NCBI RefSeq assembly: GCF_003918875.1
Contig: NW_025767561.1
Span: 186,001 to 250,000, forward strand
Direction: 5' to 3'
Source of the DNA: Haliotis rubra
Taxonomy: Eukaryota
DNA: 64,000 nt
Below, in pieces: positions 2,442 through 62,723 of the stretch. A model generated the notes under the pieces. The model was given only the letters and a program-made list of their open reading frames with translations, searched no databases and was not told where the DNA came from. Position 1 is the stretch's first letter. Each line of letters begins with the position of its first letter. The translations under genes were made by a program, and so were the position numbers.

Positions 2442-2545
2442 CGTGAGAGACCCAACCATGCTTGCATGTTTCACATTGACGGAGACAGGACTTTCCAGGG
2501 GGAGAAGCATTCACACAAACAGTTGGGGTGCGTACAACGGATGGC
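2442..2545 (-). CDS. BNC2: Basonuclin (BNC1/BNC2/disco family) coding exon, conserved Cys-rich N-terminal block; contains one extra base in a G5 run
   Basis: Acceptor ttctttttccag|GCC and donor CACG|GTAAGT. Removing one base from the run at 2498-2502 gives [34 protein letters not shown], which I recognise as the basonuclin motif (vertebrate AIRCTLVNCTCECFQPGK...CDQCKHGWVAH). The two halves appear in ORF-track frames 2471..2695 and 2320..2514. Confidence 0.92.
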
Positions 2546-3642
2546 CTGGAAAAAGAATGCTGTTTTCATAGAAAACTCCGATTTCATAGCAGCAAAATGT
2601 CGTATAACATTGTGAAGGTTTGGTAGTCGAGGAGGTCTGTCAAACATCCGTATGTCCATGCTGCGATGGAAACTGCCACGACCATGAATATTCATTGCTT
2701 TGTTCTCCCTGGGGGTAACTCAAAGCACTAGTAGTAAAGCAGGTTGGTATGCAATTGTCTAATTCCCAAAACATGCATGTTTGCTATTTTGAAAAGTTAT
2801 TTCATTTTGAGGAATACAGCTAGGGTGTGGAAATACACACACTGTCCTTATTTGAGAGGATGGCACTTTAAGCCAGAGGAAAAACTTTGGTCTGACAACT
2901 CTTCATTGCCTCTCAGAGTGTTCCAGCCTCTCTCTTAAACAGAAACAATTCCAAAAATCCCTGTTACTAAATGACAGATGCCCTGCGTAATAAGCGGGAG
3001 GCATGGAGTATAGGTAATGGACCAATGTGCGAGCCATAAATGAGGAGCGAACTTGTCGAGCATGTTAGACACATAATTTCATTTCATCTCATTATTGATG
3101 TGGACGGTTTTTTCTTACTCTCTCGATCGCCCTCCCTCTCTCGGCACGGATTCTTCATTCGAGACTGTTATTCTAGCTCAGGCCTAACGAGGCAGATTTT
3201 TATTGTCATGGTCTTAATAACAGTGATCTGGAGCTTCCTGGTAGTGAAGGAGGCGGGCGGCCACTGGTAAGGTCCGAGGAGGGAAGGGGCAGGGCTCGGA
3301 GGAAATTAACAAAAACTGCACATAGATTATGTTCCCTCACAAAGATAACATTACTCAACACTCCACTGCTGGTCAATGATTATGAAAATTTGATGAGAGA
3401 TGATGGACAGGCGAGAAAAGTTGAAGGAACTAGTTATTATCGTGTGAGGCTAACAGATATTTAGTGGGTGCTGATATGTCGGTATCAGCAGAGTCCCACA
3501 CAGTACAGCCCATCTTGTACTTGAGAGGACTCCGAGGAGGAGGAACTGCTACAGTTTGGTGTATTACAATCTCTCCAACTAGACATTGAAATATTTTAAA
3601 AACATCTAGGGTTCTGGAACATTAATGTTTCCATCCTCAGGT

Positions 3643-3745
3643 ACATTTAAACAGGTAACAGAAAACATTTAAACAGGTAACAGAAAACATTTAAAACAGT
3701 TAACAGAAAACATTTAAAACAGTTAACAGTGAACGTTTTAAACAG
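3643..3745. repeat. Short tandem repeat, 22-23-bp unit, about 4-5 copies
   Basis: ACATTTAAA(A)CAG(G/T)TAACAGAAA repeated. Confidence 0.85.
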
Positions 3746-4849
3746 CTTGTGTTCAGAATGATTCTTTTGTTCATTTCATTATCTAAACTGGCCACTTTGT
3801 ACATGTATTAAAAGCATATTTGTAATCCTGCATATTGCTTAAATTCAATGAATTTCCCAAAGATCAAAATTAAATATCTGATATTTCTTTTGAAACAGAG
3901 GAATCATAAATCCAAAAATAAAAACAGCTCAACTAGACATGGACTGTCATTTCTGAATATAGAATTCTAAACAGCACTGGATTTAAATCAGCTCATAAAA
4001 ATTGTCATGGGATTTGAAGTAAAGGAGGTGGGATTTGAATTCCTGACTCCTTCTAATTTCTCAATAAATTATTTCATCAAATATGGAAATGATTAAGATT
4101 CTTGTTCACAAACCTGTTGATCAAATACACGGAAATTTAGTCAAAAGTAGCTATTACGTGCAACATATAAGATAATATCTCACTTTTTCCAGGCTGTTAT
4201 GTTGTATGTTTACCATGATCTTTATTAAAAAATTGTACTATCATGTGAAACTAAAACATCATAAGATTGCTTAAGTAGATTCATTTCATGTAAAATAGAC
4301 TTGTCACCAAGAAACATAACAACCACAGAAACCATAAAAAGAATGATTATAATAATTAAGTTTCGAAAATCAACATACAGAAATAATACTCTTGTCTAAA
4401 TAAACTTTCTATATAAGGCTCCTCTTTAGCCTTCACAAGCTATTAAATTTCCTATATTTCCAATCCTAACTCCCTCTCTATCGTCTCTTGTTGATGTTGT
4501 TAACATGATGAAAAAAATATTCCACTGATGATATTTCAATATTATTTTGTCAGGTTATTATTAGCTTTTCCTAGGGGAAGAGAAACGTCAAACTACAACA
4601 TCAAATATTGCCATGTATTCATTACACCATACAATCCACATCCAGTTATGTTTGCACACAGATTATCTATAATTTCCCTGTTAAAAGCCCCCGAGCTGTG
4701 GAGTGAATTGCTACTGATATATTGAACAGATTTCTATAGAGCCCACTTGATTGGTTATGATGCAGGGAGGGTTGCGTCTACCTGTAAATCAGATGCTATG
4801 TGTATTTTGATTTATCCCCTTTCCTCTGCTGCTGTGAATGTATTGGGTG

Positions 4850-6900
4850 AGGAAGCTTCAATAAGTGGACACCCAAGCACTGTTCACTCCCAGGTATAAA
4901 TCTCCACCATGGGACAACTGAACCATCCAATAACTTGAACTTTGCAGATTTCATGACCCTGTGGCTCCAAGAAACATACAGACATGGCTGGGCATGCTAC
5001 TCCCGATGCTCTCTCGTTTGGTGCAGTAATTGAACAATTCTTTATTCTTTGTCAATACTTGTGTCGTGTGGTCATGAGAGACAGTGGGAGAAGGACAGAT
5101 GCTGAGTTATAGGACATAAATACAATTGCTTTGACACAGAATGGAGACACCTGGAATTTTTCATGTCACGACTGACAAATCAAAGTCTGGGGAGTTGGGA
5201 AGACAGATGACTCTGCCACCGAAAATGTTGTTGCTGGAATCAGAGTTTGGTTTTATCAGATTAAAGCAGGAATTTGTCACTGACGTGACCATTGACTGAA
5301 GCTAAACGAGGATACTCTCTGATTCTGGGTGTCATTTGCACACTGCAGACTCGCTCGATTCCATCTTCTTAATTGGGACTGGTGGGGCTGGGTTTGGAGG
5401 AATGCCACACCACAGGGAGGAAAGAAGAACAGAGTGATTATTTGGCCAAACAGCTCTCTGTCAAGTTGTTGATGCAACAACAAAAGACCCTGCACTGCCA
5501 TTTCTTGCAGATGATCATAAACGTCTTTTTGTGGTCCAGCAGATTATAGTTTTGGCATAATAAGAAGTATTCTGTTAAGAAGATATACAGACCAACTTGA
5601 AGTGTTGGTTGACGGCTGGTGGGTTCCCACAGGCACAGAGACCTCAATCGGGGTAATGAGTCCCCTTGATCAATATTGATCAATACCACAAAAATGTCTA
5701 CCCTACGAGGACAGACAATACATCTCTATGACAAATCCAGCCAAGTTGTGGTGGACAATAAGCAGTAGTGGCATCACTCAGTTAGTGATTAGGGTGATTG
5801 AATGTCATTAACTGACTCTTTGACATGGGGCCTGGATTGCTGGGGACCAAGGGCAGCTATTGGGGACAAACGTGCCTGATGAATGCATGGGACGCACTAG
5901 GACCATCTCAATCATTTTAGCTTGTGAAACTCATTTTCCTGCCATAGCAAGATATATTGACATTGGGCTCAAATAACTTGAGAGCTGGTTGGGAGAGTGT
6001 CATGAAACTTCATCTCCAAACCCCATTTCTCCAGCTCCCATCTCTAGCATCTGTGGACTATAAATAGCCCCTTCCTCTCTCATCCTATCTCTGCACTGTC
6101 TACACTGTCATCTGACAAACTTCCCTTCCCCATCTCGCCAAGTTTTCTCAACAAATATTAGAGTCGCAGAAGATCTGGCAAAACTGACTAGACAATTCCA
6201 CTGTCCATTTGATGAAGTATGGATGCTGTCTGTACCATCCCTTGTTTACCTCACTGTAGAATGACACAAGACTGATGATGACCTCTGAAGACGAGCCAAG
6301 GATGCGTAGTGCTGTATATATCCCATCTACAGATGCCTGCGATTCCTACCACTGAACCGTGAGCCAAACATGGGACTCATTCACACAAATAATCATTGAT
6401 TTATCACTTCACCTTATAACTCCTCACCTCCACTCTTTCTCTCTGTCCACACACACCTTTACAACAAAGTTTAAACAGTCAAAAAGTTGAATAAAACTGA
6501 AAAAAACCTACCTCAAGCGGTTTCATGACTGGCCTGACATGGGCATGCTGACTGGCAAGTAGTAGGCTTCCCTTCCCCGTCACAGAGCTGGAGGTGACGC
6601 CTGGCGAAACACACACCAAACACAAGCCAAATTTAGACAGTGAGCACTGGGGTCCACACAGCCAGGAGGGAGGGGGTGATTGGTAAATGAACAAGTTTTA
6701 TCATGTGTGGCAGCAGAAGTGTGGTCTGAGTGCTGTGTCCTGGGTTGTCTTGCCACTACCAGATGCCAGGATGGACAGACCAGGCAAGGCAGTAGGGAGG
6801 AGGAACTAAGGAACAAGAGATGACAGCCATATTGCTTTGATCTTGTCTCAGGGAACCGGGATGGGCAACTTTGGAGGGGGTGTTCCAAAACTTTGTTCAA
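4850..6900 (-). mobile_element. Highly decayed DIRS-like remnant in basonuclin intron
   Basis: Scattered motifs in DIRS order on the minus strand: DP..HC..C, LPLVPSNP, QLGWI, LINIDQG..LW, FFFPP, TTRHKY. Boundaries approximate. Confidence 0.4.
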
Positions 6901-9231
6901 CTTGTTCAGTAGTTGTTACAGAATATGTGGACATATTATTTCTTTGAGATTATTTTGAGCAGATGCGTAGGATTGGAACTGTGACACCTCCAGCATGAGA
7001 ATAAAGTGGATAATAAGAAATGACTTTGGAAATCATGAGATCCCAACTATATATATAACTTGGTTGGAGTGAATATATTGTTATTATCAGCTTTATGAGA
7101 GACAATTTTCTCAATTAAAACAAAATAACTGAACACGCAAATGCCACAGGCTGATTATCTACAAGAGAGAAGACAACTGACAGGTCACATGGATGGAGGC
7201 TAAGTGCATTGTCACACATAAAGTGTCAAACATTATAAATAAAATATTTTACACCATCAGACAAATCTATAATTTCTATCACTAATGAAACTATATCAAA
7301 TGACAATCTTGAATATATAATTTAATATTCGGAAGCGATCAATACTTAACATTTCTAACAAATTAACTTTTAATGTGAAGCGTATTTTAAACCTGCTGTG
7401 TGACTAAACCAACAGCAGGGAGATTCAGTAGCTGGACTTGAGTATTACAACTGACTACTGGTACATGCCTTGCTTCCTACTGGTTATATGACCCTGGTAT
7501 CAAGCACAGAAAAATAACCATCATGAAATTCTTACTTACAAGCCAACAGAGCTAGTACCAAAAGCCGACTTTGTCATACACATCAGTCATGTCATAAAAC
7601 AGACAGATGGCCACAGTAACCAAACCGTTCCTTTGTAGCCTGACATGATGACTTCAACAGATCCGTTGCTGCCAAACTACCCTTTAACATCTAGCCCATC
7701 CTTACATTACATACAAAGTCTTTATGGGCGTTACCATGTACTCCTTCTTAACATGAAGTTATCACCAGTTCTAAACTAAAGAATATTTCTTGACAAACTG
7801 TGTCTGGACATGTAATTACAGGCCATAAATAATTCTTTACAAATCCCACCCTACATCGTCTATACTTTTCAAAAAGGAAATGCAGTGAATAACATGCATG
7901 TTTTTCAAGTTGAAACATTTTAGGGAATCAGTCATAAGTAGTTGAAGTTTCTAAGATACATTCGGGTATTTCTAAAACATTGATTGTCCATTCTGTCCTA
8001 AAGACATAACAAGCAAGTTAGTACACACTTTGTTGCTCACTTCACAGCTGAGTCATACAGGGAAATCATTCAACTTGCTAACAGTTTCTCATAAAAGTAT
8101 AATTAATTGTTCAATGTAGCTATTATATTCATATGTTGCTATAACATTTTTCTATCTATACGAAAACATAATATAGATTTGTCAGTGTGGTATTTTATTG
8201 GTGAATTGAAAAAAAGATGACAACCGGCGAGCAGGGTGATAAGCCAGTGTCATCAGCACATTTTCAGAATGGTGCAGCATTTCATAAAGAGAAAACATAA
8301 CAATAAAGAACGTATAGTTGACCATAACTACTTTATGTTATAGTAGACAATGAGAATTTAGTGTATGAAATGAAGGTTTACCAGTGTTTTAGTTGTATCA
8401 GATTGTGTCAGCTAGATGTGGGAGGAAAACCCATAGGGATAACTGACATAGTCAAACTCAGAAACAATATCATGCAAACCACCAGGAAAACAGCCAACCA
8501 GCAGCTGGGACACAACTAAGTGCAGTATGAGAGGAACACTGACAGATTCCTACCCCAACATCTTAATAAATTCATTTATATGTCAGAGAAATATAACACA
8601 AGACCAAAAGATTAGAAGTACACAGAAATATCTGTCCATCTCTGACTTGACAGTCTTCCCAATACTGTTTTGATGAACAGGTTATATGAACTGAAACTGA
8701 ATTTTCATGTTTTCTGTTCAATAACATGTTTTCAGAATTTGTGTGTTTAGAGCGATATGACAACTTTGACAAATGTAGGAAAGCTACAATCAATAGAATA
8801 TCATCAACTTGTATACCAGTTAGGCTGAGATGGGTGCCCCACTGCAACAAGTGGGATTCTGCCAGCATAGGAAACCAAATGTTCCTCATATCAAACTTTC
8901 ATGTTACACTTAGTGCCATCTTGAAGTAGTTACTTGGAAAACCATGTGTATACATTGTTTATTTTCCTACTGCAATGAATTAACAATAGTCATAAAAACA
9001 CAACAAATGATGAACACTATTTGACAAACTGTATGGTGGATATCTTAGTGAATAAGAACTCTAAACAGTGTCTTGTATGTGTGTCAACTAGCACAATTAT
9101 GAAAGCAGGTATGGCTCAGAATGTATGCGACTCCTGCAATAGCATCTGTGTACCAACAATCCTCTACTTCTGAAGGATTTAAAGAACTGTTTAAATATAC
9201 ACTCTATACATTATGTACATGTCATCACGAC

Positions 9232-10851
9232 AGTCCAGTCTCTGCAACATGTACATCCAGACAATACATCCCAGTCTCTGTAACCTGTCTGTACAGACTA
9301 CACATCCCAGTCTCTGTAACCTGTCTGTACAGACTATACAGTCCAGTCTCTGTAACTTGTATGTACAGACTACACAGTCCAGTTTCTGTAACCTGTATGT
9401 ACAGACTATACATCCCAGTTTCTGTAACCTGTATGTACAGACAATACATCCCAGTCTCTGTAACCTGTCTGTACAGACTACACAGTCCAGTCTCTGTGAC
9501 CTGTATGTACAGACTACACAGTCCAGTCTCTGTAACCTGTATGTACAGACTACACAGTCCAGTTTCTGTGACCTGTTTGTACAGACTACACAGTCCAGTC
9601 TCTGTAACCTGTATGTACAGACTACACATCCCAGTCTCTGTGACCTGTATGTACAGACTACACAGTCCAGTCTCTGTAACCTGTATGTACAGACTACACA
9701 GTCCAGTTTCTGTGACCTGTATGTACAGACTACACAGTCCAGTTTCTGTAACCTGTATGTACAGACTAAACAGTCCAGTCTCTGTGACCTGTATGTACAG
9801 ACTACACAGTCCAGTCTCTGTGACCTGTATGTACAGACTACACAGTCAGGTTTCTGTAACCTGTATGTACAGACTAAACAGTCCAGTCTCTGTGACCTGT
9901 TTGTACAGACTAAACAGTCCAGTCTCTGTTACCTGTATGTACAGACTACACATCCCAGTTTCTGTAACCTGTATGTACAGACTAAACAGTCCAGTCTCTG
10001 TAACCTGTATGTACAGACTACACATCCCAGTTTCTGTAACCTGTATGTACAGACTACACATCCCAGTCTCTGTAACCTGTGTGTACAGACTACACATCCC
10101 AGTCCCTGTATCTTGTATGTGCAGACTACACAGTCCAGTCTCTGTAAGCTGTCTGTACAGACTAAACAGTCCAGTCTCTGTAACCTGTTTGTACAGACTA
10201 CACAGTCCAGTCTCTGTAACCTGTTTGTACAGACTACACATTCCAGTCTCTGTAACCTGTATGTACAGAGTACACATTCCAGTCTCTGTAACCTGTCTGT
10301 ACAGACTACACAGTCCAGTCTCTGTAAGCTGTTTGTACAGACTACACATCGCAGTTTCTGTAACCTGTATGTACAGACTACACATCCCAGTTTCTGTAAC
10401 CTGTGTGTACAGACTACACATCCCAGTCTCTGTATCTTGTATGTACAGGTTACACATCCCAGTCCCTGTATCTTGTATGTGCAGACTACACAGTCCAGTC
10501 TCTGTAAGCTGTCTGTACAGACTATACATCCCAGTTTCTGTATCTTGTATGTACAGGTTACACATCCCAGTCCCTGTATCTTGTATGTACAGACTACACA
10601 GTCCAGTCTCTGTAAGCTGTCTGTACAGACTAAACAGTCCAGTCTCTGTAACCTGTTTGTACAGACTACACAGTCCAGTCTCTGTAACCTGTTTGTACAG
10701 ACTACACATTCCAGTCTCTGTAACCTGTATGTACAGAGTACACATTCCAGTCTCTGTAACCTGTCTGTACAGACTACACAGTCCAGTCTCTGTAAGCTGT
10801 CTGTACAGACTAAACAGTCCAGTCTCTGGAACATGTATGTACAGACTACAT
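9232..10851. repeat. Minisatellite, 36-bp unit, about 45 copies
   Basis: AGACTACACA(TC/GT)CCAGTCTCTGTAACCTGTATGTAC; gives the 12-aa-periodic ORFs in five ORF-track entries. Confidence 0.97.
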
Positions 10852-11989
10852 TCAATATTATTATATTTGACTTGTTGGCTGTGACTGGATGAAGTGTCTT
10901 AGCCTGGCCATCTTCTTAGACTCACAACATGCAACTACTTACACTGACAAATAGGAATTACCACCACATTGGGTAATATTATTAACAATCAGTCTTTGTT
11001 TCAATAAATAATGCAAGTGTATTGGACAAAATCAATAAACAATTATCACTTATTGTTACCATATTAAGCTTATAAACGTCTGTATAGTTGTTGATCACAA
11101 TCAGTGGGCCTGTATGCTGATGACTAGCTACAGATTATTGGATTATGGACAAATTGTCATAAACTGTCATTTGTTGCCATAATCAAAAATATATTTGAAT
11201 TGCATAAGAATGTCTTTTGAAAAGCAAATCCTTTTTAACATTAAGACACAATGCATTATTTATATGGTTTAATGAGCTCTGTCATAGGTGTCACAAGTAT
11301 TGGTGAGGGACAGCTGGACTGATTACCCTTCAAACAAGAGGATGTCTATGCATTAACATTGATGACAATAACATGATAATGTTGTCAAGTTAAAAGCCTA
11401 CAAAAATTGAACAAATTCTTTTGACATTGATTCACTTGTAAATAAAACATTTCTTTGACAACTAAGCCGTTTTTGTTCCACCTATCTGTGTTACACTGGG
11501 TGGTCTAGCTATTGGATGAAAGAAAAGAATACTCTATCAAATTTTGCCCCAAACTCCTTTCTGTTTCAGCCTTGTCTTTAAGGCATATGACTTCTTTTCA
11601 TTTGACTCTTCAATACAATGACTCTCAAAAGGAGAAATTCATACAAAGCAACATTTAACTACAATTTGGATTTGGGCAAATTGATATAAACAGAAATGGT
11701 TCAGATTGTATATAAAAGTATATATTTTATTTGGGGATTAGCAGTGTCAGATATAAATGTCAAATAATTGTTTAAAAACTGAAGGAGGGTCACGGCAATA
11801 TGTCAGATTTGTAAAACATATCAGTTACAAAAGGGTTAATTCCATTTTCAGCTAAGAAACTTTTTCAAAAAAGGCTATGCCTCTCAACCAAAATAATCAA
11901 TACAAGTGAACTGGTACATCTGATACTGGAGATAGTTAACAAATATGATTAATGCCTGTAATTACATTAGGTAGGACGCCTTTACAAAG

Positions 11990-12620
11990 CATGTCCTCTA
12001 TGTGGGGAGGCACCAGCAGAGCTGGGTGATCCTCCTGTCCCGGGAGCTCAGTAGCCCATCATGTCCCCCATACCGTCCTATCAGTTATACCACTGGCCTG
12101 CATAAAGTTTTCTAACTCATCACGCAAGCCCAACATTGATCTTACTTGTGACAGCAGTATGTCTGTGCTATTACTGTATCCAGTAGTCCATAAAGTTGGC
12201 AAGTTCTAGGTGTCGCCTAGCTCCCTTCTATAGTAAGCAAGCAGTGTGAGAGATGTCCTATCGGAATGGTACCAGTAAGAGGGCAGCATAGACCTATCCC
12301 ACGACTAGCAGAGCATGGGCCCACTTGGTTGTCACATGAGATCCCAGCCAATGACATTCCGATAGCAGGCAATCTCACTCCTTGCCAATCAATACCAAGC
12401 CACTTCACTCAAAGACAGATGGCACTTTAATTCCATATGGTTATGCTAATGCCAGTGTCTTTCATTAAAATTTCCTTTGTGAAGCAATCTCGGCCTAATT
12501 AATTCCTGAGACACACAGCATGACAAATCATCCCCTACCCCAGGGATGTGCCCTCAGCTGATCAAATGAGCATAGGCATGTGGGGGTTGGGCAGGACGAG
12601 AAGGGACTGGGGAGACTAGC
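11990..12620 (-). mobile_element. Decayed DIRS RNase H remnant
   Basis: Minus-strand fragments AEGTSLG*G (compare DASLQGWG), HNHMELK (compare HINMLEMK) and ISCDNQV (compare IHTDNSTV). Confidence 0.4.
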
Positions 12621-13192
12621 ACATGATCAGAGAGAATGTGACACAAGTAAGGGAGACCCTACCAACACGGCGCAACACGGGCCCATATTGATTTCAACAT
12701 CTGCAAATGTCATGATGTTTGGATCATCGCGATTATTTTGACAGTGCCACCACATGCACGTCGTTTTCGAAAATGTAACAAGTTACAATGAGGACGAATA
12801 TTGACCGTCGACTCCACGAGTCCCCGCCACGGAACCCTGGGCTCCTATTTCAGGGCAAAATTTATTATAAGTGCAGATTCATTCTGAATTATTAACATTT
12901 AAAAGGAGGAGACCAAAAGTTGACGAATCTGAGACTCGTCTGCTAGGAATTGTCATCACGCCGATCGATAGGCCGGTGGAGGCAATCAAAGATACGTCGT
13001 CTGCTAGATATAATCGAATAAATAATGCAATTTGTAACGCTATTAGTATATAACGTGTTGATTAATGATTTGGAATACATAGTTTACGTGTTACTGCATC
13101 AAAATATGAGGTGTTGGACAACAGTCAACATACAGTTTCAAATCGTAAGGCCAAATGAAATCCAATACCATGCTTAAAATTAGTTAACTCAC

Positions 13193-13201
13193 CGCCGCCA
13201 T
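13193..13201 (-). CDS. BNC2: Probable first coding exon of the basonuclin gene (Met-Ala-Ala)
   Basis: Minus strand reads gacaagATGGCGGCG|GTGAGT: good Kozak context, consensus donor, phase 0, matching the phase-0 AIRC exon. MAA|AIRC parallels vertebrate BNC1 MAE-AISC. Lies in a CpG-retaining region. Confidence 0.75.
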
Positions 13202-13430
13202 CTTGTCGGTGCCAGCCTTACGAGAAATGACATTTACGACATTACAATATTAATAAGTAATTATTGCACCATATTTTTCATGATATATATACGAAAACAT
13301 AATTCTTCGCATAATACGTATAAATGGAACGTTTATTTATTGGTTGTAGTTGTTACGACAATGGGTCACATGGTGTAAACAAACCGGAAACCGTCTCAGC
13401 GGCGGATTTACAGTTGATCACCAAGCATGA
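13202..13430. promoter_or_regulatory. Putative bidirectional promoter shared by basonuclin (-) and centlein (+)
   Basis: CpG-retaining zone about 12660-13750. YY1-type CCGCCATCTT over the BNC ATG; ATTGG (CCAAT box) 13339-13343; X-box-like GTTGTTACGACAAT 13349-13362; E-box GTCACATGG 13365-13373; forkhead TGTAAACAAA 13374-13383; ETS-like ACCGGAAA 13383-13390. Confidence 0.6.
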
Positions 13431-13716
13431 CAAGTGCAGTGATATGAAAGTATCACCCAAATGCAAGATTGGATTACATTTCTACTCGGTGACGACATTT
13501 ATTATGAACTCTTCAATTTGGTCTGTGTTATAACGAGAAGATGATGAGGTAGCTGCAAGTGATAACCCGATATTTTCAAATATTGTTTGTCAATATGACA
13601 ACAAACATGTCCTGTCAAGTTTTTCAGCTATAAACGTGTTGCCTGAATTCACTTTACTGAAGATTATGTTGTCTTTTGGAATGCACAAACTTGAAGTGAT
13701 CAAACACGGCTAGAAT

Positions 13717-13973
13717 GCACTTTACCGGGCGCAGCCCTCGCTGCTTCCTTTACGATCCTTAGGGTTAGGGTTAGGGTTTAGGGTTAGGCACCCTTTACGA
13801 TCCTTAGGGTTAGGGTTTAGGGTTAGGCACCCTTTACTATCCTTGGGGTTAGGCACCCTTTACGATCCTTAGGGTTAGGTACCCTTTACGATCCTTAGGG
13901 TTAGGGGTAAGGGTTAGGGTTAGGGAACCCCAGCAGCGCTAATTAATCTGAAAAAGTGCGCCCGGTAAAGTGC
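13717..13973. mobile_element. MITE-like element with 17-bp inverted repeats enclosing TTAGGG arrays
   Basis: GCACTTTACCGGGCGCA (13717-13733) and TGCGCCCGGTAAAGTGC (13957-13973). Interior is (TTAGGG)n interspersed with five C(C)CTTTAC(G/T)ATCC blocks. Confidence 0.7.
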
Positions 13974-13984
13974 CCGGTATTTTG

Positions 13985-14138
13985 TAGATATTCAGGCTGA
14001 TACATCAATACACTAATATTTAAAATGGAGCTGTACAGTCCATTTTAAAATTAGTGCAGAATGGACCGTACAATCAAAATATCTGCTTACAATCTGCTTA
14101 CATTTGTATTGTTGATGTGTATCAGTCCTGAATATCTA
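13985..14138. mobile_element. Short MITE with TA termini
   Basis: TAGATATTCAGGCTGATACATCAA ... TTGATGTGTATCAGTCCTGAATATCTA imperfect TIRs. Confidence 0.65.
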
Positions 14139-15075: not shown

Positions 15076-15305
15076 ACCCATGAAGATCCGGTTTAGTAAC
15101 CCATGCTTGTTGTAAGAGGTGACTTACGGGATCGGAGGGTCAGATTCACTGACTTGGTTGACACATGTCATAGTATCCCAATTGTGTAGATTGATGCTCA
15201 TGCTGTTGATCACTGGATCATCTGATCTGGACTCAATTATTTACTGACTGCCACCATATAGCTGGACTATTGCTGAGTGTGATGTTAAACAACAAAGAAA
15301 CCAAC
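15076..15305 (+). mobile_element. SINE with Nin-type central domain
   Basis: ACCCATGCTTGTTGTAAGAGGTGACT core and (AAC)-rich tail; homologous to the minus-strand copy at 33001-33232. Confidence 0.75.
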
Positions 15306-15409
15306 TATGCTTTGCAGTAAGATATTTCTAGCATTTGGCTTATACTACACATGGCCCTCAGCAAGTAGACAATTCAAATTCGATTAACTAGAGCAGATTT
15401 ATCAATTGT

Positions 15410-16376: not shown

Positions 16377-16413
16377 ATGTCCACTATATCGCTAGAATTT
16401 GACTGCAAGAAAG
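16377..16413 (+). CDS. CNTLN: Centlein probable first coding exon (exon 16318-16413; MSTISLEFDCKK, phase 1)
   Basis: Acceptor ttcttgcag|16318, CCAACATG Kozak context (in-frame upstream ATGs at 16362 and 16368), donor AAAG|GTAGGT. Phase 1 joins the next exon to make GAT (Asp). No homology support for this short peptide. Confidence 0.55.
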
Positions 16414-51095: not shown

Positions 51096-51726
51096 AGACC
51101 CTTCCAGGCCTTTATGATTGAGGGTCTATGGCTGTTCCCTAGGACCTTCAAGGCCTTTGTGATTGAGGGTCTATGGCTGTTCTCCAGACCCTTCAAGGCT
51201 TTCATGATTGAGGGTCTATGGCTGTTCCCCAAGACCTTCAAGACCTTCGTGATTGAGGGTCTATGGCTGTTCCCCAGGACCTTTTAGGCCTTCGTAATTG
51301 AGGGTCTATGGCTGTTCCCCAGGACCTTCAAGGCCCTCGTGATTGAGGGTCTATGGCTGTTCTCCAGGACCTTCAAGACCTTTGTGATTGAGGGTCTATG
51401 GCTGTTCTCCAGGACCTTCAAGACCTTCGTGATTGAGGGTCTATGGCTGTTCTCCAGGACCTTCTAGGCCTTCATGATTGAGGGTCTATGGCTGTTCCCC
51501 AGGACCTTCAAGACCTTCATGATTGAGGGTCTATGGCTGTTTCCCAGGACCTTCAAGGCCTTCATGATTGAGGGTCTTTGGCTGTTCCCCAGGACCTTCA
51601 AGGCCTTCGTGATTGAGGGTCTATGGCTGTTCCCCAGGACCTTCAAGACCTTCATGATTGAGGGTCTATGGCTGTTCCCTAGGACCTTCAAGGCCTTCGT
51701 GATTGAGGGTCTATGGCTGTTCCCCA
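51095..51726. repeat. Minisatellite, 45-bp unit, about 14 copies, probably derived from a DIRS recombinase 3' end
   Basis: AGGACCTTCAAGGCCTTCGTGATTGAGGGTCTATGGCTGTTCCCC. Confidence 0.95.
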
Positions 51727-54352
51727 GTCTATCCTTGCCACATTGCCTTCTACTCAGGGGAAATGAGGGAGTGGGATTAGTTGCACAATAGAGATACCAT
51801 GATTTAGACTGGTTTTGATTTTAAACATTGACTGACATCCTGAAATCACACAACTACTGGAACAACAGTCACTTCCGAGGGTGAGTTATTGAGGATATTT
51901 CATGTGTCTTGTGACATATGATGGATTTGTCATCAAGTGATGAGAAAATATGACATTTACATTTCATAAAATGACAGATACACCATATTTCACTATTCTA
52001 TTTATTATATATATACTTCTATTTTTTGTTTATTAGAAGTTATACAGCATTAATGCAAGAAAATTTGATCATAATCATAAATGAAATATGTAATGACTGT
52101 TGCCAATCAAGTGAAATAAAGTCTCTTGTACATAAATTGTCAGTTTTGAATGCTGCCACCATGTAAATCAAGTGTTTGGAACAGTGTTAAACTCACACCT
52201 AAATTGTGTTGGTTGTTGTGAACCTGGAAACATTTCTTGCCATCATATTAAATACAGCAGCAAGAAATGTTCTAAAGTGTTGTCACAACAACCAGGTGTG
52301 GACTCAAGTTGACAAAACACATAATCAGAGGTATATAACGTGACATGTAGTAATGAAAGAAGACAGTTGCAAATCAGCCATTCATGTCCTCTTGATGGTG
52401 ACAATGAAAGCGTTATTGATTTAAACAGTTAACAGAATTATTGTGTTTGATTTGATGTACATTTCTAGGATATTTGAAGATATGAATTTTGTCCTAACCA
52501 GCCACAATGTTGCATGGACAAATTAATCGACATAGCATGCATTTGTTCTTTTTTAAGTCCTTTCAAGTAGACAACAGTGGATGCAACAAGAGTTGGCGTC
52601 TATCAGGGGCAGTCCCACGTAATATTTTAGCGTCCATGCATGTACAGCTGCGAGGTCCCAGTGCCTTCCCTAATACAACTGGTGTGTAAAACAGATATGA
52701 CCTTGTGTCACTGGAGCAAACAATTCTTTTCAATTAACTCTCCTCTTAAATGTTATTTCAATAATTCTTTGTTATTCTCCCGAGTCACGTCATATCGGCT
52801 GATTCTCGGGAGAAAATTCATGTTCCCCAGCTGTCACGAATGTCAGATGAAAGTTTCATTTTGCAAGTACCGTCAGCGAATTCTGCCCTGCTCAGCACAC
52901 AAAGGCAGGTATCATAAATTTCCCTTGCTCGTAGAGACACATGACATTATTCCGCTTATTACAACTCCCCGAGTTTACAATAGCAGAGTGAGAGCGGTAG
53001 GATTAACACATACTGCGTATCCAACTCGGTGACTGATATCCGTTTGTTGCGGCTGAATCTCCAGAGATGCAGCTCAATTGAGGGTCATTGACAAATTAGC
53101 AAATTAACCCTAGAGAAGGGGGAATATTAATGACAACCAAGCAAGTGCGCTTCTGTGGAAATACGCAGATATGATGGTTGGTGTTGGACACAAGATTAAG
53201 GTTGTAATGTGTGCTATTTGGTTAGCTGACTGTGGGACAGTATCATTTGGATTTCATATTGTGATAGATTGAGGTAGTTATTAATCTTGGTGTATGATCA
53301 AATACCAGGAGCTGCTGGTGGCTAGTCAGGCATTCTTAGCTGATAAAGTGGATTCATATCTTTCAACACAGAGTCAAATATATCTGACACATTGTATGGT
53401 AGTATCAGTAAGACCTTATATTTATTTATTTCTCATATGGGCAACATTCAGGCATTATTTGATGTGATAACTGCAAAAGTTGATTCACTGATAGACACTT
53501 GTGCATTTTATCATCCTAACTTTGCTTCCACAGGAGATATAGGAGGATGAGCTGAAGCAATATGTCCTAGTAGATCTTACTGAAATAAAATTGAATGTCA
53601 ATGCTTTACAGATCATTGTGATATCATCAGTCACAAATCACTACTCTTTCAGCACAAGGTACTAGTTGTTATGGTTTTTAAACAGAAAAAGTTAGATGCT
53701 CATTGTTGTAACTTCAAAGGTAAAATATATCAAGGCTGAAATATTTGTAAGCTGTATGTAAGAATCTTGATGGATTTTCTCCAAGACAAGAGAATTCTCA
53801 AGATGAGAATCACTGTTGGTTTTTCTAAGGACATTGTCTTTGAAGGAACTGTCTTTCTGAATCAGAACATTAGTGATATAATATATGGCATTACATTAAT
53901 TGTAGTACTACTAATAATAGTCCCTGGCTTGCTCCAGTTGCCAAAGGTCACCAATAGCTTGCATGTTGTGTCAACCCTGGATTATTTACAGTTGGAATAT
54001 TGTTGAGTAGCATAATGTTGTCAGTCCTAATACAATTCCTAATAGTGTTGTGAGTTGTTTAATACAAGTAGAGTAGTTTTGTAAGTCAGTATGTCCCTCA
54101 ACCCTCGTGTAATACAAACAGAATAGTCTTCTCATCAGATAAATGCAGTAGTTCTGTTCTAATGGTCATCCTAAATGCACAATAAGAATGGTCTTGTCAA
54201 CCATTGTAATACAACAAAAGTGTTGTCTTGTCAACCATGTAATGCTATAAGTAAAGCTGCTGTCAACCAGCATAATCCAAACAGAAAAAATTGTCTCAGT
54301 AATACCATACAGAAGTGAATTTCTAACCTACGTCTTCTGTAACAAATTTCAG

Positions 54353-55550
54353 TGCTACATCTCACTGTATCAAGTCCCTCCTTTGCTTTCCCACCCCATC
54401 AGTACCCAATGTTACTCAGATCTAGGGTCCCTCCTGCCTTCCCCACCTATCCTGTACTGCAATGCTACATCTCTGTATCAAGTGTGCCTTCCTAATTCCA
54501 TCCTGTACTCCAATGCTATGATCTCACTGTATCAAGTGTCTCCTGCCTTCCCATCCCATCTCTGTACTCCAGTGCTAAGATCTCACTGGTCAAGTTCACT
54601 GTATCAAGGGTCCCCTCCTTGCCTTCCCTATCCCATCCTGTACTCCAATGCTACATCTCACTGTATCAAGTGTCCCCCCCTCCTTGCCTTCCCTGTCCCA
54701 TCCTGTCCTGTACTCAATGCTACATCTCACTGTATCAAGTGTCCCTCCTTGCCTTCCCCATCCCATCCTGTACTCCAATGCTACATCTCACTGTATCAAG
54801 TGTCCCCTCCTTGCCTTCCCCACCCCATCCTGTACTCCAATGCTACATCTCACTGTATCAAGTGTCCCCTCCTTGCCTTCCCTATCCCATCCTGTACTCC
54901 AATGCTACATCTCACTGTATCAAGTGTCCCCTCCTTGCCTTCCCTATCCCATCCTGTACTCCAATGCTACATCTCACTGTATCAAGTGTCCCCTCCTTGC
55001 CTTCCCCACCCCATCCTGTACTCCAATGCTACATCTCACTGTATCAAGTGTCCCCCTCCTTGCCTTCCCCACCCCATCCTGTACTCCAATGCTACATCTC
55101 ACTGTATCAAGTGTCCCCTCCTTGCCTTCCCTATCCCATCCTGTACTCCAATGCTACATCTCACTGGGTCCCCAAGTGCCTTCCCCACCCCATCCTGTGC
55201 CAGTGCTTCATCTCACTGTATCAAGTGTCCCTCCTTGCCTTCCCCACCCCATCCTGTACTCAATGCATCTCACTGTATCAAGTGTCCCTCCTTGCCTTCC
55301 CCACCCCATCCTGTACTCCAATGCTACATCTCACTGTATCAAGTGTCCCCTCCTTGCCTTCCCCATCCCATCCTGTACTCCAATGCTACATCTCACTGTA
55401 TCAAGTGTCCCCCCATGCCTTCCCTATCCCATCCTGTACTCCAATGCTACATCTCACTGTATCAAGTGTCCCCCTCCTTGCCTTCCCTATCCCATCCTGT
55501 ACTCCAATGCTACATCTCACTGTATCAAGTGTCCCCCTCCTTGCCTCCCC
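54353..55550. repeat. C-rich minisatellite, about 62-bp unit, degenerate 5' copies
   Basis: CCAATGCTACATCTCACTGTATCAAGTGTCCCCTCCTTGCCTTCCC(C/T)A(C/T)CCCATCCTGTACT. Confidence 0.95.
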
Positions 55551-58500
55551 AAGAAATTCACTTTAAACAGTGCCCAGCTGGCTGCGTCACAGCTGTCTTG
55601 TGTTTGGGGATATTAGCCACAGGAAATTACTTATTTCCTCTCTGATTTGTGTTCTTGTAAAATTGCAAGAGTCTGTGTTGTAAGGCAGAAGAGAGCAGAG
55701 CGGAACGCATGTCTCATAGAAGACAGATCCTGGGTGCTTCCTCACTTGGACTGTTTCATCTACAGCTGGGGCTCGGGATAGGCAACTCCATTCGTCTTTG
55801 CTCTGTCAAGGTTGATGAACAGCAAAATTTGTTTAATAAGAAGAGAATGTTATCATTCAGGCATTAACTTTCATTGTAACTATGGAATACTTGTTTGTGT
55901 GTGATGTTAATATTGGGGGATATTATTTAAAATCCAATGCCTTCAATTAACAAAAGAATACTTTATATGATAACTTGGTCATCATAGGTTGTCTCAAGTA
56001 AGTGAAAGGATATGTTCTGAAATTTGAACTGACTGTCTTCTTGGCACCACCTATACTGTAATGAATGACTGTTTCTAACTGGGTAGAAACCAACAAGGAG
56101 AATCTATTTGATGGATGCTATATGTGAACAATTTGCAGAGTTAGAGAGTACTTGTCTGGCTGTGTAAAGGAATGCAGATGGTCCCTAATGGCCCCCTCTT
56201 GTGACCCCCAAACCAGAGTGGCCATGTGATACTGCACCTCCAGACTGAGGAGGCTCCCCACCAGTGCCAACATAGCCCCGTGGTGGAATCAGCATTCTCA
56301 CAATGGTCTTCAGGACCTCTTTGGAAATTCTTGTTTATTTAAAAGGAGTTGAGTGTTAATTTCTTGTAGTGACATAACTCTGACTTTTCTTAATGTTTTT
56401 AAGGAATATTTGATGAATGCGACGGGTTTATATTGTATCATGAGTTGATCTTGAAAATTAGTAAATGACTTTAAGTACTGTTTTCTCTTTGAGAGTTTCA
56501 TTCCAGGTTTTGAATCATTATAAAAAACCCGGAAAAAAACCAACAACCCAGAACATATAAACAAATTCTTACTGTGAATTGAAGGAACAACAGCATGTAT
56601 TAATGTGTATCAGATTTGAGAAATGCTTGAAATTACAAATAGAAACAAGTTTCCATTTATTAACGTTTGTTAAAATCCTATTGGGATGTATCATGAATTT
56701 AGTGGGCGTTGACAATGAAACAGTCCTGACAGGAATGGTTCCTGCTGTGCTTGGGTCCAGTGAGGTCATCTGAATGTCTTGCAAAGCAGTGATGTGACCT
56801 CTATGTCCCAGCAAGTGGACAACTTCTCCAGGAGGTAGTAGGCCCTTGGTAACCCTGTTAGCGTGTATAGCCAGCGGAGTTGACAGTCGCCTCCTCAACT
56901 TGCCAGTAATACCATTGAGCAAAATCAATAACACATCTTCACATAAACTGGCATGGGACATGGATGGAACGCTTCTCGATAAAATTTTAGAAATTTTCAA
57001 TAATTGTCAAATTTCATGTTTTAAAAAATTAAATTACATTAGATGTCAGATATTTGATATCTGTCAAATTTCAGGGTAAGAAAAAAGTAAAGTAAGTTTT
57101 TACAATAAGTGGCTGGGTAGTGCTACATAGCGTGTTTGGCCCCCTTCATTAAGCACCTCGTGGAGAAAGCGTCCCATCTGTCCCCTCGTCATGGGATCAA
57201 TAACAGCCAGGACATCACGACTAATTACACTTTCCGCTGTTGACATAGGACAGCCCGCCTTTGGAACAGCCCATGCAGCCTGCCAGTTCTCCAGAGAAAT
57301 CGGCCACTTTCCATGGGCGTATCAAATCCGTAACTGAAAAGACGGACAATAACAATTTTATAGGATTTTGTGGCACCTCGACACTGAGGACAGAGTCATG
57401 GATATGCCTGTCAATACCGAGTGTGTCCCGGTGTCGTATTGATTCGGACGTCGTGTAATCACGCGGGAATCCGGGTGGCGTGATAAGACGCGCTTCTGCG
57501 CCTGTGCCCACAAGTTTCGATTGCATCGCAATTTAATCAAACTGCCTGCCGATTTTCTTTCGCAGATGATTTATTTCTTTTGATGTGAGTCAACAATGGT
57601 TTTTGTGTGGAATAATGAAAAATAACAGCGAGACGTTAACTTAATTCATAAGCAGTTCTTGTCCCACTGGTTGGTCCTGTTTGAGAATTCCAGCACTCTC
57701 TCAACAGATAGCTGTAACTCTCTTACAAGTGGCAGTGCCACCTTGTGGACACTCAGCAGTGTTGGACAGACAGTTGTAGTCCATGTCTTACTAAAAGAAG
57801 CAGAATTAACTACATGTGCCTTCACTGACAGCTGGCTCCACTTGGGCAAGCAGGGGAGATCATCCATGACAGCTGCTTCAGTAACAAACATATACACTTA
57901 GCTGTACTTTGGTCAGTTAATGGTATCTGTCACATGGTTCATAGTGACTGTCATGTCCTTATAAGTCGTACAAAAACACAAACTGAATAATTGTTCTAGT
58001 GGAGTTACTATTTATAGTTCATGTTATCTCATGTTCTTCACATGTACGACATGGTACATATGTATAATAGAAACAATCCATTATTTTGCTCAAAATACAC
58101 CATGCACACAATTCTAAGATGATTTATACGTAAGCATTAGATCTTGAATTAGGGTACTGAATGATAAAATAATCAAAATTGATTAAGTTACATTTCTTTT
58201 GAATCAGATTTATCAAATTTCACTCATGAAGTTCCTGAAGTGAGAATACTTTATTTTGGTTAATGTACAAATTTGTTACTTGTTAGCATATATTAGCAAG
58301 TGATGATGTCTTTGTTGATTATATAAGTTATTTGTTGTCACAGTAGGCCCTCCTCACATACACATATCTTGATATTCACATTTTCAATGCAACATATCCT
58401 GATGATTATTTCAACATTTTTAGTACGACTTTATCTGGCAAACACAAGTTGATTAGTTTAGACTTGTTCTGATGTCTTTTTTTAAACAAAAATAGATCAT

Positions 58501-61500
58501 GAGTCAGTCATTGAGTTGGCTTCTCACATACTGCATGGTAAGGTGATGTCACTTCCAATAGACTATAGGATTGAGCTATGTAATTATGCTGAGTTGAAAG
58601 AACTTATTGAAGGTATATTGTCCTGCACATGTATCAAAAGCAATGGAACAACAGAAATTCTATCAGATGGATGGAAAATATAACAGAAAAAATATAGATA
58701 AAGACAGTCCCTTTCCCTGTCATTCTATCATCACAACTTATCCCACTGTTCCAAAACATATTTTTTTATTACAGAATGTAATATAACTTTCATTAATGTT
58801 CATTAAAAAGGGAGGGCTTTTGGTTCAAGTGACAGAAATCACGTACTTAACGATGGTCCTTGGAAGTTGTCAAGATGTCGTTGAGGGGAATTTAATTTAC
58901 TTTGAAAGAGAGAAATATCAAAGAGGGGTGTCATTTAGGACAGTCACAGGACTAATACCAGAAACAGCTCATGGTTTTTTTATTGTGTGTCTTAGCAGAT
59001 TAAATCAACAGTCATGAATCTGGTCAGAGCATAACAGCATGTTTCATGTATTTTAAACAGTAACAATCATGTGAAATTGCTGGGCAACAAAATGGCCAAC
59101 AATCATGTGGAATTGTTGGTCGTATGGTTTGAGGACATGAGACAAGCTTGTCCTGGCATCGTTGGGATCAAAGAACCAGCAGTGTGCACCACTTAAGTGT
59201 TTATCATCTTCAGTCCCGGCCAGAGTCCTGATTGTGTTTTGTGATTATTTAATTACGGGAATCCGGCGAAGGATTTGACTAATTTAGCGGAGCACATGGC
59301 CGTGCAGGACAATTATTACAAGCGGTAGTGTTCAACCATCCATGGGTAGGATATTGATTACTGCCGACTGGTGTCGCACAAAATCATTGCAAATCTTGTT
59401 GCTGAAGCCTCAAAATGTCTCGTTGTGCAATGCATTAGCTTGACCAATCAGCTGTGGGCAAAGGGTCACATGTCGTCATTTGTCATTTATGTCTTGATTA
59501 GACAGCGCTATGTTGGTTACAGAAAGTGATTTTAGGCTTTTTACCAGCACAACGTAATTATATTGAACCCAAAGAAACACAGTTGAAAAGATTTTGAAAT
59601 TGATAGATTTTTTCATCTCTGCTTGTCATACAGGCAGTAACACACTTTGCCAGTAGCAGTAAGGATTTTATTGAATTATGATAGTTTGTAATCATATTCA
59701 GGGGCTTCTGTCAGTTTATTCCTTGCCCACAGCTATGTGAAATTTGAAAAAAGTGTTTTATTGTCTATTAATTTTAATTATGTTCATGAAAGTGATGCTG
59801 ATCATTTTCCAATTTAGGTATGTGGCTGGACGCTGTCGCAGAGCCTATTAGGTTGCAATTCTGATTATGACAGTGTTATGAGGAGGATAATTAATGACGC
59901 GATGCTATCAGCGCTGTAGTGATTAATGGGAGCCAGAGTGGAGAGGACATGTTTTATCACATCCACTTGACTCTCAGTCCTCTACTGAGGGAATAAATCA
60001 CACACAGCCATTTTGTCCCATATCTTTTTCACTCCAGACCTTTCCTGGAATGAATGACTTCAACTTGTGAATCCTGTTGCACATGTCATATGTTGATTGC
60101 AAAATGAATAGTCATTTCTTGTGAGAAATTGTCACTTGTCATATTTTCGTTAGCTGGCTTACAGTGCTTCAGTTCAAAAAAATGTTGACAACACTGATAA
60201 TCCTCAACACTTGAACATGGTCACTATATGTGATGTCATTTTTACCAGGATTGTTTGCATTTATTTTAAGGGATTCATTTCCATATGACACATAAGACTT
60301 TGAAACGTCATGACTTGATGAAGACTCTTAATATCCAACATTCCTGACCTGATGATATATGTTTCGAAAAATGTAAACCTTATTTTCACCTTTACCTTAT
60401 TTCAGATGTTTATCATTTTGAATACTATGTGTAATAGTCAGTCCAAGCAAATATTTAAAAAGTATACTACCTAATGATTTCTAACATTCAGTACATTTAT
60501 CGTACAGTTTCCTGGTATAAAGGTTTCAGACAAGTCCTTGGCAGACATTTATAGCAAAGACGTAGATTTGATTTTGTAATTGAATGTTACACATCCGACA
60601 CTGATTGCATGTCTGGAGTCAGAGAAAAGTCATAACCTGGGTACATTCATTTATTTTTTCATTCTAAATTGCAACGAGTCTTGATAGTTGGGGAGGGTGA
60701 TCCATGAGACTTGTCACAATCATTGTCAGTTCTCTGGCTGCTATTGTTGCAGCATCACCTTCACAACGCAAGACAGACTCCAAACACGACTTCATCTTGC
60801 CAAAGTTACGCTTGGAGGTGAAGGTGCTGCCATCTTGAAATCGCTCATGATTTGGAAAACATGATGATGCCATATGAACCCTAATCCAATCACTGTACAA
60901 ATCCTGGTGCTGCTGTTTAGTGGGATTAGTACCTGTTAGGTGATCAATGATTGGGTCAGTGGTTCGAGAATTCTTCCACATTTCAGTGGACTTCCTCAAG
61001 TGTCAGTTATCTGTCATGGAGCACAAGTGTTTTTAAAACTGTGATTTTAGAAAGGTTACAAAAGATATGAATAGAATTTTATTAGGTGTCTTTTAAATAT
61101 CAATATTAGTAGAATTTTGAAGTACTGTTGTTAGAACTTGAGTTTTATCTGTATTAGAGTCCAAATCAGCTTATGTCTCCAAACCACCAACATTGTTTGA
61201 TGTGCATATACAATATTTATACAGAAATTGAAGATTGCAGGTGTTGGATAAAATATATGGATGCAGAATGTTCAGTGTTGAAACTGACCTATTTTGAGAG
61301 GTTTTCATACGTGGACACTGTTTAATCTTCCAATATTCCAACTATGATCAGGTAGTAATCTGATTGTTTCGTGGACCAAATATTTTCTTTCTAATTTATG
61401 TTACCCAATGAAATTGCAAACAGTTGGCAGATTATTTATGAGTAAAACTACAAAGAAGACTTGTGTGGCTTTAATTTTTGTTAAATTTGATCATGTCTAG

Positions 61501-62641
61501 ATTAAAGATACCATGAGTGATCCCAGACATACAGTTCTCCATGGTACCAATTGCCTATGCATTGTAAAGCAGTGTTACCATGTCTGTGTTGCCCAATCAC
61601 AGTGTTTTTGTGTTGATGTCAATCAATGGACTGACACAATGAAGGTGACACAATACAAGCACTGTTGTTGAAAAAAACAATGCCTATAAATTGTCACAAT
61701 TTGTAGTCTACACATTAGGTAGATAAACAGGTATAAAATAGTGCTGACATTTATTTGTGTGCTGTGCAATTTGTTCCCTTACTTTGTGGGACATGTGAGA
61801 ATGTCCTGAAGCTAATCTGCTTATTTAATCTACATCTTTTCCAATTTTACACTAAGAAAAATGCATTATGGTCCCTTTAGAAATGTCCAAGTTTGAAATA
61901 TAAAATGTACATTTCTATGGAGTACGTTATCAACAATATATATAATGTATCTTTATAATCTTTGTAAGTTTGTAAATGTAAGTTAAAAAAATGTTAAATG
62001 AAAGAGAACAAATTGCTCTCTGATTACATTGTATTGATTTGTTTCGGAATATCAATACATTCTTGATAAATGGTTCGCTTTCTCAAGGTATTGGAAAAGA
62101 TCTGTCAGTTAAAGTTGTTTATGGTTTGTTTCCACCTTTAACATTTCTGTACAATTCTCATGTAGGAATAAAATCTGAAATTTAGCTACTGAATGAGGAA
62201 AATATCTAAATTTATGAAGTAGAACTGTTTCCAACAGATTTATCAAATTACCATAAAAAAGTTCCTGATCTGGTGACTTAGTTCTTAGGTCTTTCAGTAA
62301 ATCTTCAAATGAAATCATTATGCATCTTACTATGTGTTATGCATGATTTGATTTAACATCATTAAAGTCCATATTGATCAGTATTTATGATATACATTAC
62401 TAGTTATCACAGTAAGCTTTGCGCATGTCAGTACAGGTCATAACTGCACCATCATGTAGTGTATCACAGTACTTAGTTGGCATGCTTTACATGGTCCAAA
62501 ACTAATGTGACCACTCTTGAGCTTGGTTCCAATTATTTGATGTGACTGGCACTGAAGGAGATTCTGTCTGTGGGTAGAACAGTACCACTAATACAGTTGG
62601 TTCCCTCTTTATCCATGACTGACATTAGCTGTTTTGTTCAG

Positions 62642-62723
62642 GTGAAGAGTTTGGAGACTAAGGAGCAGAGCAGCGAAGAAATCCATCGCCAGACCATCAC
62701 CGACACACAGAGAGAAAAGCATG
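62642..62723 (+). CDS. CNTLN: Centlein coding exon (VKSLETKEQSSEEIHRQTITDTQREKH) after a 29.9-kb intron
   Basis: gttttgttcag|GTG...CATG|GTGGGT. Phase 0 is compatible with the exon ending at 32763; charged coiled-coil sequence. The gene continues beyond the window. Confidence 0.8.

Follow-up and report, generated by a model that had tools for sequence, protein, structure and literature searches.

Human BNC2 and CNTLN are divergent neighbors with ~244 kb (44 + 200 kb) between their transcription starts, and "BNC2; CNTLN" has been assigned 43 ultraconserved elements. Conserved ancestral microsyntenic gene pairs with bidirectional promoters, for example HSPD1-HSPE1, have been described by Irimia et al. 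2012 (PMC3514665) and are recognized by six signatures. No description of the BNC2-CNTLN pair outside vertebrates was found in the literature; a listing in the pair list of that study is possible. Here, we analyze a stretch of 64,000 nucleotides from the abalone Haliotis rubra (assembly GCF_003918875.1, contig NW_025767561.1, positions 186,001 to 250,000 of the forward strand), hereafter the window. An earlier reading of this stretch from its sequence alone had placed basonuclin on the − strand and centlein on the + strand, head to head, as an ancient bilaterian pair apparently sharing one compact promoter. What this sequence-only reading had stated of the vertebrate genes, that they are divergent and far apart, agrees with the literature. 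Reciprocal matches of the assembled peptides (phmmer, tblastn) confirm the identities of both genes, and the exons of the two are divergent. The explanation that best accounts for the data as a whole, to which we give a probability of about 70%, is that the window holds the divergent 5′ halves of basonuclin and centlein, a bidirectional promoter, a basonuclin leader exon, a basonuclin translation start in a separate exon encoding MKPLE, and an assembly frameshift.

The composition of the window is eukaryotic and AT-rich, with strong CpG depletion (median observed/expected ratio, o/e, 0.27), a heavy load of minisatellites, and no N runs, and its protein matches are best in abalones. It aligns collinearly with Haliotis cracherodii over ~15 kb, with neutral stretches 70-85% identical. 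Abalone conservation was measured as a 50-nt identity profile against this species; the background is 70-85%, and the comparison sequence reaches to about 15.2 kb of the window. The RNA evidence comes from four RNA-like runs of related species (90-97% alike), whose contigs were aligned to positions 10900-16850. These Logan contigs carry no strand or end information, and their depth is unfit for ranking genes.

The first seven exons of centlein were placed on the + strand, exon 1 being noncoding and the other six coding. A phmmer search of 1.8 billion representatives with the exon peptide at 31546-31677 returned 43 protein matches. The named matches that were looked up are centleins, from H. 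asinina, Biomphalaria, Batillaria, Elysia, Tegillarca, Patiria, Ptychodera, Saccoglossus, coelacanth, and camel. Centlein of H. asinina (XP_067666453) is 100% identical over this exon, and tblastn places its residues 1-165 on the six coding exons at 82-100% identity. The N-terminal centlein block ADKEFVWSLWKRLQ... REKEKSEAKD.KVLEILQ is matched in the window. All six coding exons have AG/GT borders, and the spliced coding sequence reads through 165 aa without a stop. The window holds these 165 of ~1260 centlein residues, with the remaining protein past exon 7; the H. asinina gene spans 108 kb. Pfam assigned no family to the single exon peptides of either gene, and coiled-coil matches were below the cut-off.

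The centlein transcript begins near 13.4 kb, where the sequence-only reading had put it, and the coding start lies 2.9 kb further on, at an ATG in exon 2 that this reading had missed. Because the ATG (16368) is only 50 bases past the acceptor (16317), an upstream noncoding exon was expected. RNA contigs contain such an exon: in run X1, a 78-base contig (record 2) corresponds to 13385-13462, and in run X3, record 19 joins 13400-13462 to exon 2. The real 5′ end of exon 1 is at 13385 or upstream. Its donor is GC (13463-13464), making intron 1 (13463-16317) a GC-AG intron, with AAT followed by GCAAGA in the window and GCAAGT in H. cracherodii. Contigs cover exon 2 in all four runs, and a loose end past 16413 continues with exon 3 sequence. 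Exon 1 contains an ATG at 13444, which was dismissed as a start, as it is not the annotated one. In run X5, a contig joins ~13622 to exon 2, with no canonical donor visible there in the window; this joint may represent an alternative centlein first exon.

Basonuclin is represented on the − strand by the exon that encodes its N-terminal Cys/His motif, hereafter the AIRC exon. The borders of this exon are clean, with the acceptor AG (2547-2546) directly before GCC and the donor GT (2441-2440) directly after CACG. In tblastn, it is matched by basonuclins of Patiria, Asterias, amphioxus, Xenopus, and H. cracherodii, with 79% identity and a summed E of 2e-11 over two frames for the amphioxus protein. 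The motif (A/S)IRCT..NC.CECF.PGK.....C..C(K/R)HGWV.H, with an intron directly before it, is found at 2545-2442 and is present in 115 of 120 retrieved basonuclins. A word search with the 81-aa open reading frame around the exon gave no candidate, and the basonuclin reference was reached via synteny. It is a 1012-aa zinc-finger gene of Patiria that lies head-to-head with centlein, carries a matching 34-residue N-terminal stretch and three zinc-finger pairs, and is named basonuclin-1-like in the database. No further basonuclin exon was found in window 1-2441. The three C2H2 zinc-finger pairs would lie past the window's left edge; zf-C2H2 is present in the collinear H. cracherodii gene.

The AIRC exon agrees with 33 of the 34 residues of H. 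cracherodii basonuclin-2-like, the exceptions being one Q/H replacement and a break of the frame, which the sequence-only reading had not noticed. A run of five C in the window, as compared to four in H. cracherodii, shifts the frame inside the exon, which is not open in this assembly: a stop follows seven codons after the extra C. If the frameshift were real, basonuclin would be a pseudogene here and its conserved 5′ architecture a relic. We consider this highly improbable. The change is a single base in a homopolymer, the commonest assembly error; the other four differences from H. cracherodii in this exon are three synonymous changes and the conservative Q/H; the splice sites are preserved; and the noncoding blocks around the exon show 94-100% conservation. 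Judged from sequence, the frameshift is most likely a homopolymer error of the assembly, and we read it as such an error or a private allele rather than as decay. An assembly frameshift in a conserved exon would break automatic annotation.

The pairing of the two genes is old. Head-to-head pairs were found in Asterias, Patiria, Ptychodera, amphioxus, two abalones, and Batillaria, so that Mollusca, Echinodermata, Hemichordata, and Cephalochordata are covered here and Vertebrata by the literature; the proposal of an ancient bilaterian pairing is thereby upheld. The divergent start codons are 329 bp apart in Asterias, 581 bp apart in Ptychodera, where a second basonuclin start exon lies 4.2 kb inside centlein, and 641 bp apart in amphioxus, where the neighbor was verified as centlein. 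In Patiria they overlap, crossing by 86-135 bp. As the pair is compact in these invertebrates and spread over ~244 kb in human, the compact state is ancestral and the vertebrate state derived. Neither partner is visible in the 10-kb flanks of Biomphalaria, Tegillarca, and Saccostrea, which are uninformative because the abalone coding starts are already 9.8 kb apart. The pair is ancient but of an ordinary kind, a conserved 5′-5′ gene pair. Beyond it, the gene adjoining the centlein 3′ end in Ptychodera matches Pfam CCDC171, and a TSP1/ADAMTS-repeat gene follows centlein in H. asinina. The human 9p22 order, which we take to be CCDC171 - BNC2 - CNTLN - SH3GL2 - ADAMTSL1, contains neighbors of both types, which may mark a wider conserved neighborhood.

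As the first exon of abalone basonuclin, the sequence-only reading had proposed nine bases, ATGGCGGCG (ATG GCG GCG, encoding MAA), spliced directly to the AIRC exon at 2545. This element and its donor are 100% conserved in H. cracherodii. The 15-mer CAAGATGGCGGCGGT is shared without a mismatch by amphioxus, H. cracherodii, and the window, and has two mismatches in Ptychodera. Allowing up to two mismatches, each of these four has one copy, with none elsewhere in ~0.57 Mb of fetched loci, and every copy adjoins the centlein 5′ end and points away from centlein. A looser pattern for the exon was found five times, always in place, versus ~0.27 occurrences expected by chance in 1.1 Mb. Its counterparts are gacaagATGGCGGCGgtaggt in amphioxus, aaacATGGCGGCGgtaagt in Ptychodera, and cacaATGGCAACGgtgagt in Asterias and Patiria. 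In amphioxus, hemichordates, and starfish, the basonuclin locus is annotated with this element as its first coding exon, and the deuterostome proteins start MAAAIRC (Saccoglossus) or MATAIRC (Asterias). A putative YY1 site at 13205-13194 on the − strand, which matches 12 of the 12 bases of the consensus CAAGATGGCGGC (PMC13017510), encloses the exon. Conservation of the element may thus serve a promoter element and a start codon together.

Taken at face value, the element would give exactly the transcript proposed, with translation from 13201, a splice from 13193 to 2545, and a protein opening MAAAIRC..., from an isoform that the contigs did not sample. The start codon lies in an ideal Kozak context, GTGAGT makes a strong donor, and phase 0 is the right one for joining to the 2545 exon; the element is kept in H. 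cracherodii, and deuterostome proteins begin in this way. Alternative N-termini, moreover, change directly before AIRC, pointing to alternative vertebrate BNC2 first exons. The RNA argues otherwise. In all four runs, low-depth contigs continue uninterrupted across 13192 (12908-13166, 12982-13240, 12972-13122, and 12962-13462); among the contigs of these runs, none ends at 13193 and no splice from 13193 to 2545 was seen. The exon is used by no abalone annotation, and abalone conservation extends 1 kb past the donor, down to about 12100, unlike that of an intron. We regard this transcript as doubtful: the nine bases stand as a conserved element at the same site, but RNA contigs cross their donor unspliced.

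Conservation past the donor belongs to an ultra-conserved block, 1.07 kb at 94-100% identity to H. cracherodii, in which 350 bases (12251-12600) are 100% identical. Batillaria also conserves 12338-12364 and 12408-12479. Every one of the four runs has low-depth RNA contigs over 12908-13240. In run X3, record 17 (depth 21) breaks at 12145, which is a − strand donor, CACAA followed by GTAAGA (12145-12140); the + strand has no AG there. A break at a canonical − strand donor with no + strand AG therefore indicates a basonuclin-sense spliced transcript with an exon ending at 12146, and it is this donor, instead of the one proposed, that is used in RNA. The block is probably a long basonuclin-sense 5′ leader exon, within which the MAA ATG opens five codons only (MAAVS, then a stop). 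A possible donor at 12959, for which the 106 loose bases in record 9 of run X2 would equal the 104-base exon at 2442-2545, was dropped because it could not be checked.

The MAA ATG lies 184 bases from the first RNA-supported base of centlein exon 1, and the nine-base element is about 180-260 bp from that exon, on the opposite strand. The sequence GTCGTAAATG occurs at 13240-13231, ~30-40 bases upstream of this ATG, and is present in amphioxus as well and, as GTCGCAAATG, in Ptychodera. TATATAT is found at 13284-13290, and an ETS-like CCGGAA at 13384-13389, the start of the centlein contig, is conserved in H. cracherodii. A CpG island at 12501-13750 (o/e 0.8-1.36, versus the window median of 0.27) covers both first exons; no other CpG island at the 5′ ends of the pair lies outside transposons. 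By their sequence, the island, the YY1 site, GTCGTAAATG, and CCGGAA are putative bidirectional-promoter signatures. The compact shared promoter proposed from the sequence alone would fit the short distance and the single island, but not the annotated basonuclin start, 6.9 kb from centlein exon 1.

That annotated start is the MKPLE exon, which opens basonuclin in the H. cracherodii RefSeq model, was missed by the sequence-only reading, and opens the basonuclins of chiton, scallop, and oysters too. The same exon lies 5.6 kb upstream of centlein in Batillaria, a caenogastropod. In the abalones it sits in a conserved block, 94-100% identical between the two species, parts of which (5607-5970 and 6606-6636) Batillaria also conserves. 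Basonuclin has at least two candidate alternative 5′ ends, and the MKPLE exon may have a promoter of its own.

If abalone basonuclin were transcribed only from such a promoter (~6.6-6.9 kb), no promoter would be shared, and ATGGCGGCG/YY1 together with the block 12146-13215 would be the centlein promoter, a divergent noncoding RNA, or an enhancer cluster. Several observations weigh against our reading, and some of them favor this alternative. About 200 nt upstream of MKPLE, including a CCAAT box (6677-6683), are conserved between abalone and Batillaria, which fits an independent MKPLE promoter. The RefSeq model of H. cracherodii starts at MKPLE and, like that of H. asinina, leaves the MAA exon without coding sequence; YY1 sites are commonplace in core promoters (PMC13017510); and the RNA contigs are unspliced at 13192. 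A search of the 10-kb flanks of Biomphalaria, Tegillarca, Batillaria, and Saccostrea gave no MAA/YY1 element. The RNA runs derive from related species rather than from that of the window, and no read or contig, the latter lacking strand and ends, shows a basonuclin transcript start. The splice partner of the exon ending at 12146 is not visible in the 221 loose bases of its contig, and nascent RNA, divergent noncoding RNA, or a longer centlein 5′ exon with its start further upstream could account for the contigs at 12908-13462. However, use of the − strand donor 12145 in RNA places the start of a basonuclin-sense spliced transcript upstream of 12335. CpG is depleted in the MKPLE region (o/e 0.21), with the only non-transposon 5′-end island at 12.5-13.75 kb, and the MAA element is the coding first exon of the basonuclin locus in four deuterostome lineages. 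With these points on the other side, we consider wholly separate promoters unlikely.

Our preferred reading, a bidirectional promoter with two basonuclin 5′ ends, allows a mechanism to be proposed. The CpG island at 12.5-13.75 kb would be the promoter region of both basonuclin and centlein, and its overlap with both 5′ ends would have held the two genes together from the bilaterian ancestor onward. The vertebrate interval would have expanded to ~244 kb and filled with ultraconserved elements. In abalone, basonuclin-sense transcripts would carry the long 5′ exon (~13.2 kb to 12146), bypassing the donor at 13192, and protein-coding transcripts would start translation at the lophotrochozoan MKPLE exon (6526). 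The sequence-only reading had made centlein a bystander, held in place by the cis-regulation of a developmental gene; the data look more like bidirectional-promoter constraint than like a bystander mechanism, in which centlein would contain enhancers of basonuclin. The conserved blocks found so far lie on the basonuclin side, in a comparison that ends at ~15.2 kb.

A broader view of the locus is offered tentatively. Basonuclin could be part of an ancient compound transcription unit anchored on the centlein promoter, whose YY1-fused 9-base start exon has been kept nearly letter-for-letter between amphioxus and abalone. In deuterostomes, this exon would feed both basonuclin and a WD40 protein with three Cys/His modules; in molluscs, it would have been demoted to the head of the ultra-conserved 1-kb leader before the newer MKPLE start. 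The WD40 protein (750-840 aa) occurs in amphioxus, Saccoglossus, Patiria, Asterias, and Ptychodera. Its start exon and its AIRC Cys/His exon are those of basonuclin; after them the protein (DSLT...) has two more Cys/His modules and a beta-propeller encoded downstream of basonuclin. Searches of PDB, Pfam, and the ESM Atlas gave generic WD40 matches only and no named family, and the 83.6-kb H. cracherodii locus, whose sequence ends 10 kb past the basonuclin stop, yielded no WD40-specific exon.

Other features of the window lie mostly in introns. A short element at 15080-15310 in centlein intron 1 has RNA contigs with depths in the thousands in all four runs; it occurs with many kinds of flank and looks like a dispersed, highly transcribed repeat resembling a short interspersed element. 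Rfam and tRNA scans of window 1-20000 found nothing, so this highly expressed repeat at 15.1-15.3 kb and the conserved blocks correspond to no known RNA family. The 30-kb centlein intron holds two partly duplicated retroelement copies (41500-50700) with open reading frames of 1063 and 874 aa and a reverse transcriptase (Pfam RVT_1). These copies are young, as their CpG is undepleted, and our guess is that the element is DIRS-like; a 45-bp minisatellite follows them at 51100-51727. Two further stretches of centlein introns, 38751-40000 and 57001-57750, are CpG-undepleted (o/e 0.9-1.4), perhaps owing to a young repeat or an internal promoter. Seven minisatellite arrays with periods of 33-118 bp lie in the introns of both genes and are the source of long false open reading frames; a 36-bp array is found at the same position in H. 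cracherodii. Coordinates of the features are collected in the table.

Table. Features of the basonuclin-centlein locus in the window, with strand and the evidence for each.
Feature	Position	Strand	Evidence
Basonuclin AIRC exon (16 residues, (G), 17 residues)	2442-2545	−	Sequence; tblastn with basonuclins; motif
1-base insertion in C run	2498-2502	−	Alignment to H. cracherodii; two-frame translation
Conserved noncoding block around and upstream of AIRC exon	2451-3450		94-100% identical to H. cracherodii
Conserved block around MKPLE exon	4551-6900		Identity profile versus H. cracherodii
Alternative basonuclin start exon (MKPLE), ATGAAACCGCTTGAG followed by GTAGGT	6512-6526	−	H. cracherodii basonuclin N-terminus
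Ultra-conserved block (probable leader exon)	12146-13215	−	Identity profile; X3 contig break at 12145
MAA start exon (proposed), ATGGCGGCG followed by GTGAGT (13192-13187)	13193-13201	−	Conservation
Shared upstream region, 183 bp, MAA ATG to first RNA-supported centlein exon 1 base	13202-13384		Sequence; RNA contigs
Centlein exon 1, noncoding	13385-13462	+	RNA contigs (X1 record 2, X3 record 19); H. cracherodii conservation
Centlein exon 2, start codon 16368 (MSNMSTISLEFDCKK)	16318-16413	+	tblastn, 100% H. asinina; acceptor; RNA contigs, all four runs
Centlein exon 2, coding part	16368-16413	+	tblastn
Centlein exon 3	18858-18922	+	tblastn; RNA contig joint to exon 2
Centlein exon 4 (ADKEFVWSLWKRLQ...)	31178-31266	+	tblastn
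Centlein exon 5	31548-31676	+	phmmer; tblastn
Centlein exon 6	32679-32763	+	tblastn
Centlein exon 7, last in window	62642-62723	+	tblastn; spliced translation
Minisatellite arrays	9230-10850, 16857-18625, 22775-23720, 29851-30622, 31787-32393, 36644-38207, 54596-55551		

These results correct existing gene models: the first exon of centlein is noncoding and its first intron is of the GC-AG type, and basonuclin probably has at least two alternative 5′ ends. With the pairs of Irimia et al. (PMC3514665), the basonuclin-centlein pair shares three of the six signatures, namely, 5′-5′ orientation across phyla, an intergenic distance of <1 kb (in abalone, if basonuclin starts at the MAA element), and conserved intergenic sequence. 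It differs in that one partner is a tissue-restricted developmental regulator with large noncoding blocks, as opposed to a housekeeping pair.

Human BNC2-CNTLN at 9p22.2 has the same two genes in the same divergent 5′-5′ orientation and, like the abalone locus with its three kb-scale blocks, is dense in conserved noncoding elements. Vertebrate BNC2 isoforms likewise change their N-terminus directly before the AIRC exon. In contrast, the human gap of ~244 kb compares with <0.2 kb between the abalone MAA exon and centlein exon 1, and with 0.3-0.65 kb or an overlap in starfish, acorn worm, and amphioxus. The closest counterparts are Asterias rubens, Patiria miniata, Ptychodera flava, and Branchiostoma floridae, in which a start exon ATGGC(G/A)(G/A)CG, followed by GT, adjoins the centlein 5′ end and the AIRC exon comes 5-25 kb further on. 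Unlike these, abalone has the extra lophotrochozoan MKPLE start exon in between. Deuterostome transcripts also splice the first two exons to the downstream WD40 protein, which was not found in the abalone sequence examined. On our reading, a vertebrate gene desert of ~244 kb with ultraconserved elements would be traceable to a sub-kilobase bidirectional promoter. This compact promoter would persist in molluscs, echinoderms, hemichordates, and amphioxus, where overlap of the 5′ ends as the cause of the linkage is testable in small genomes.

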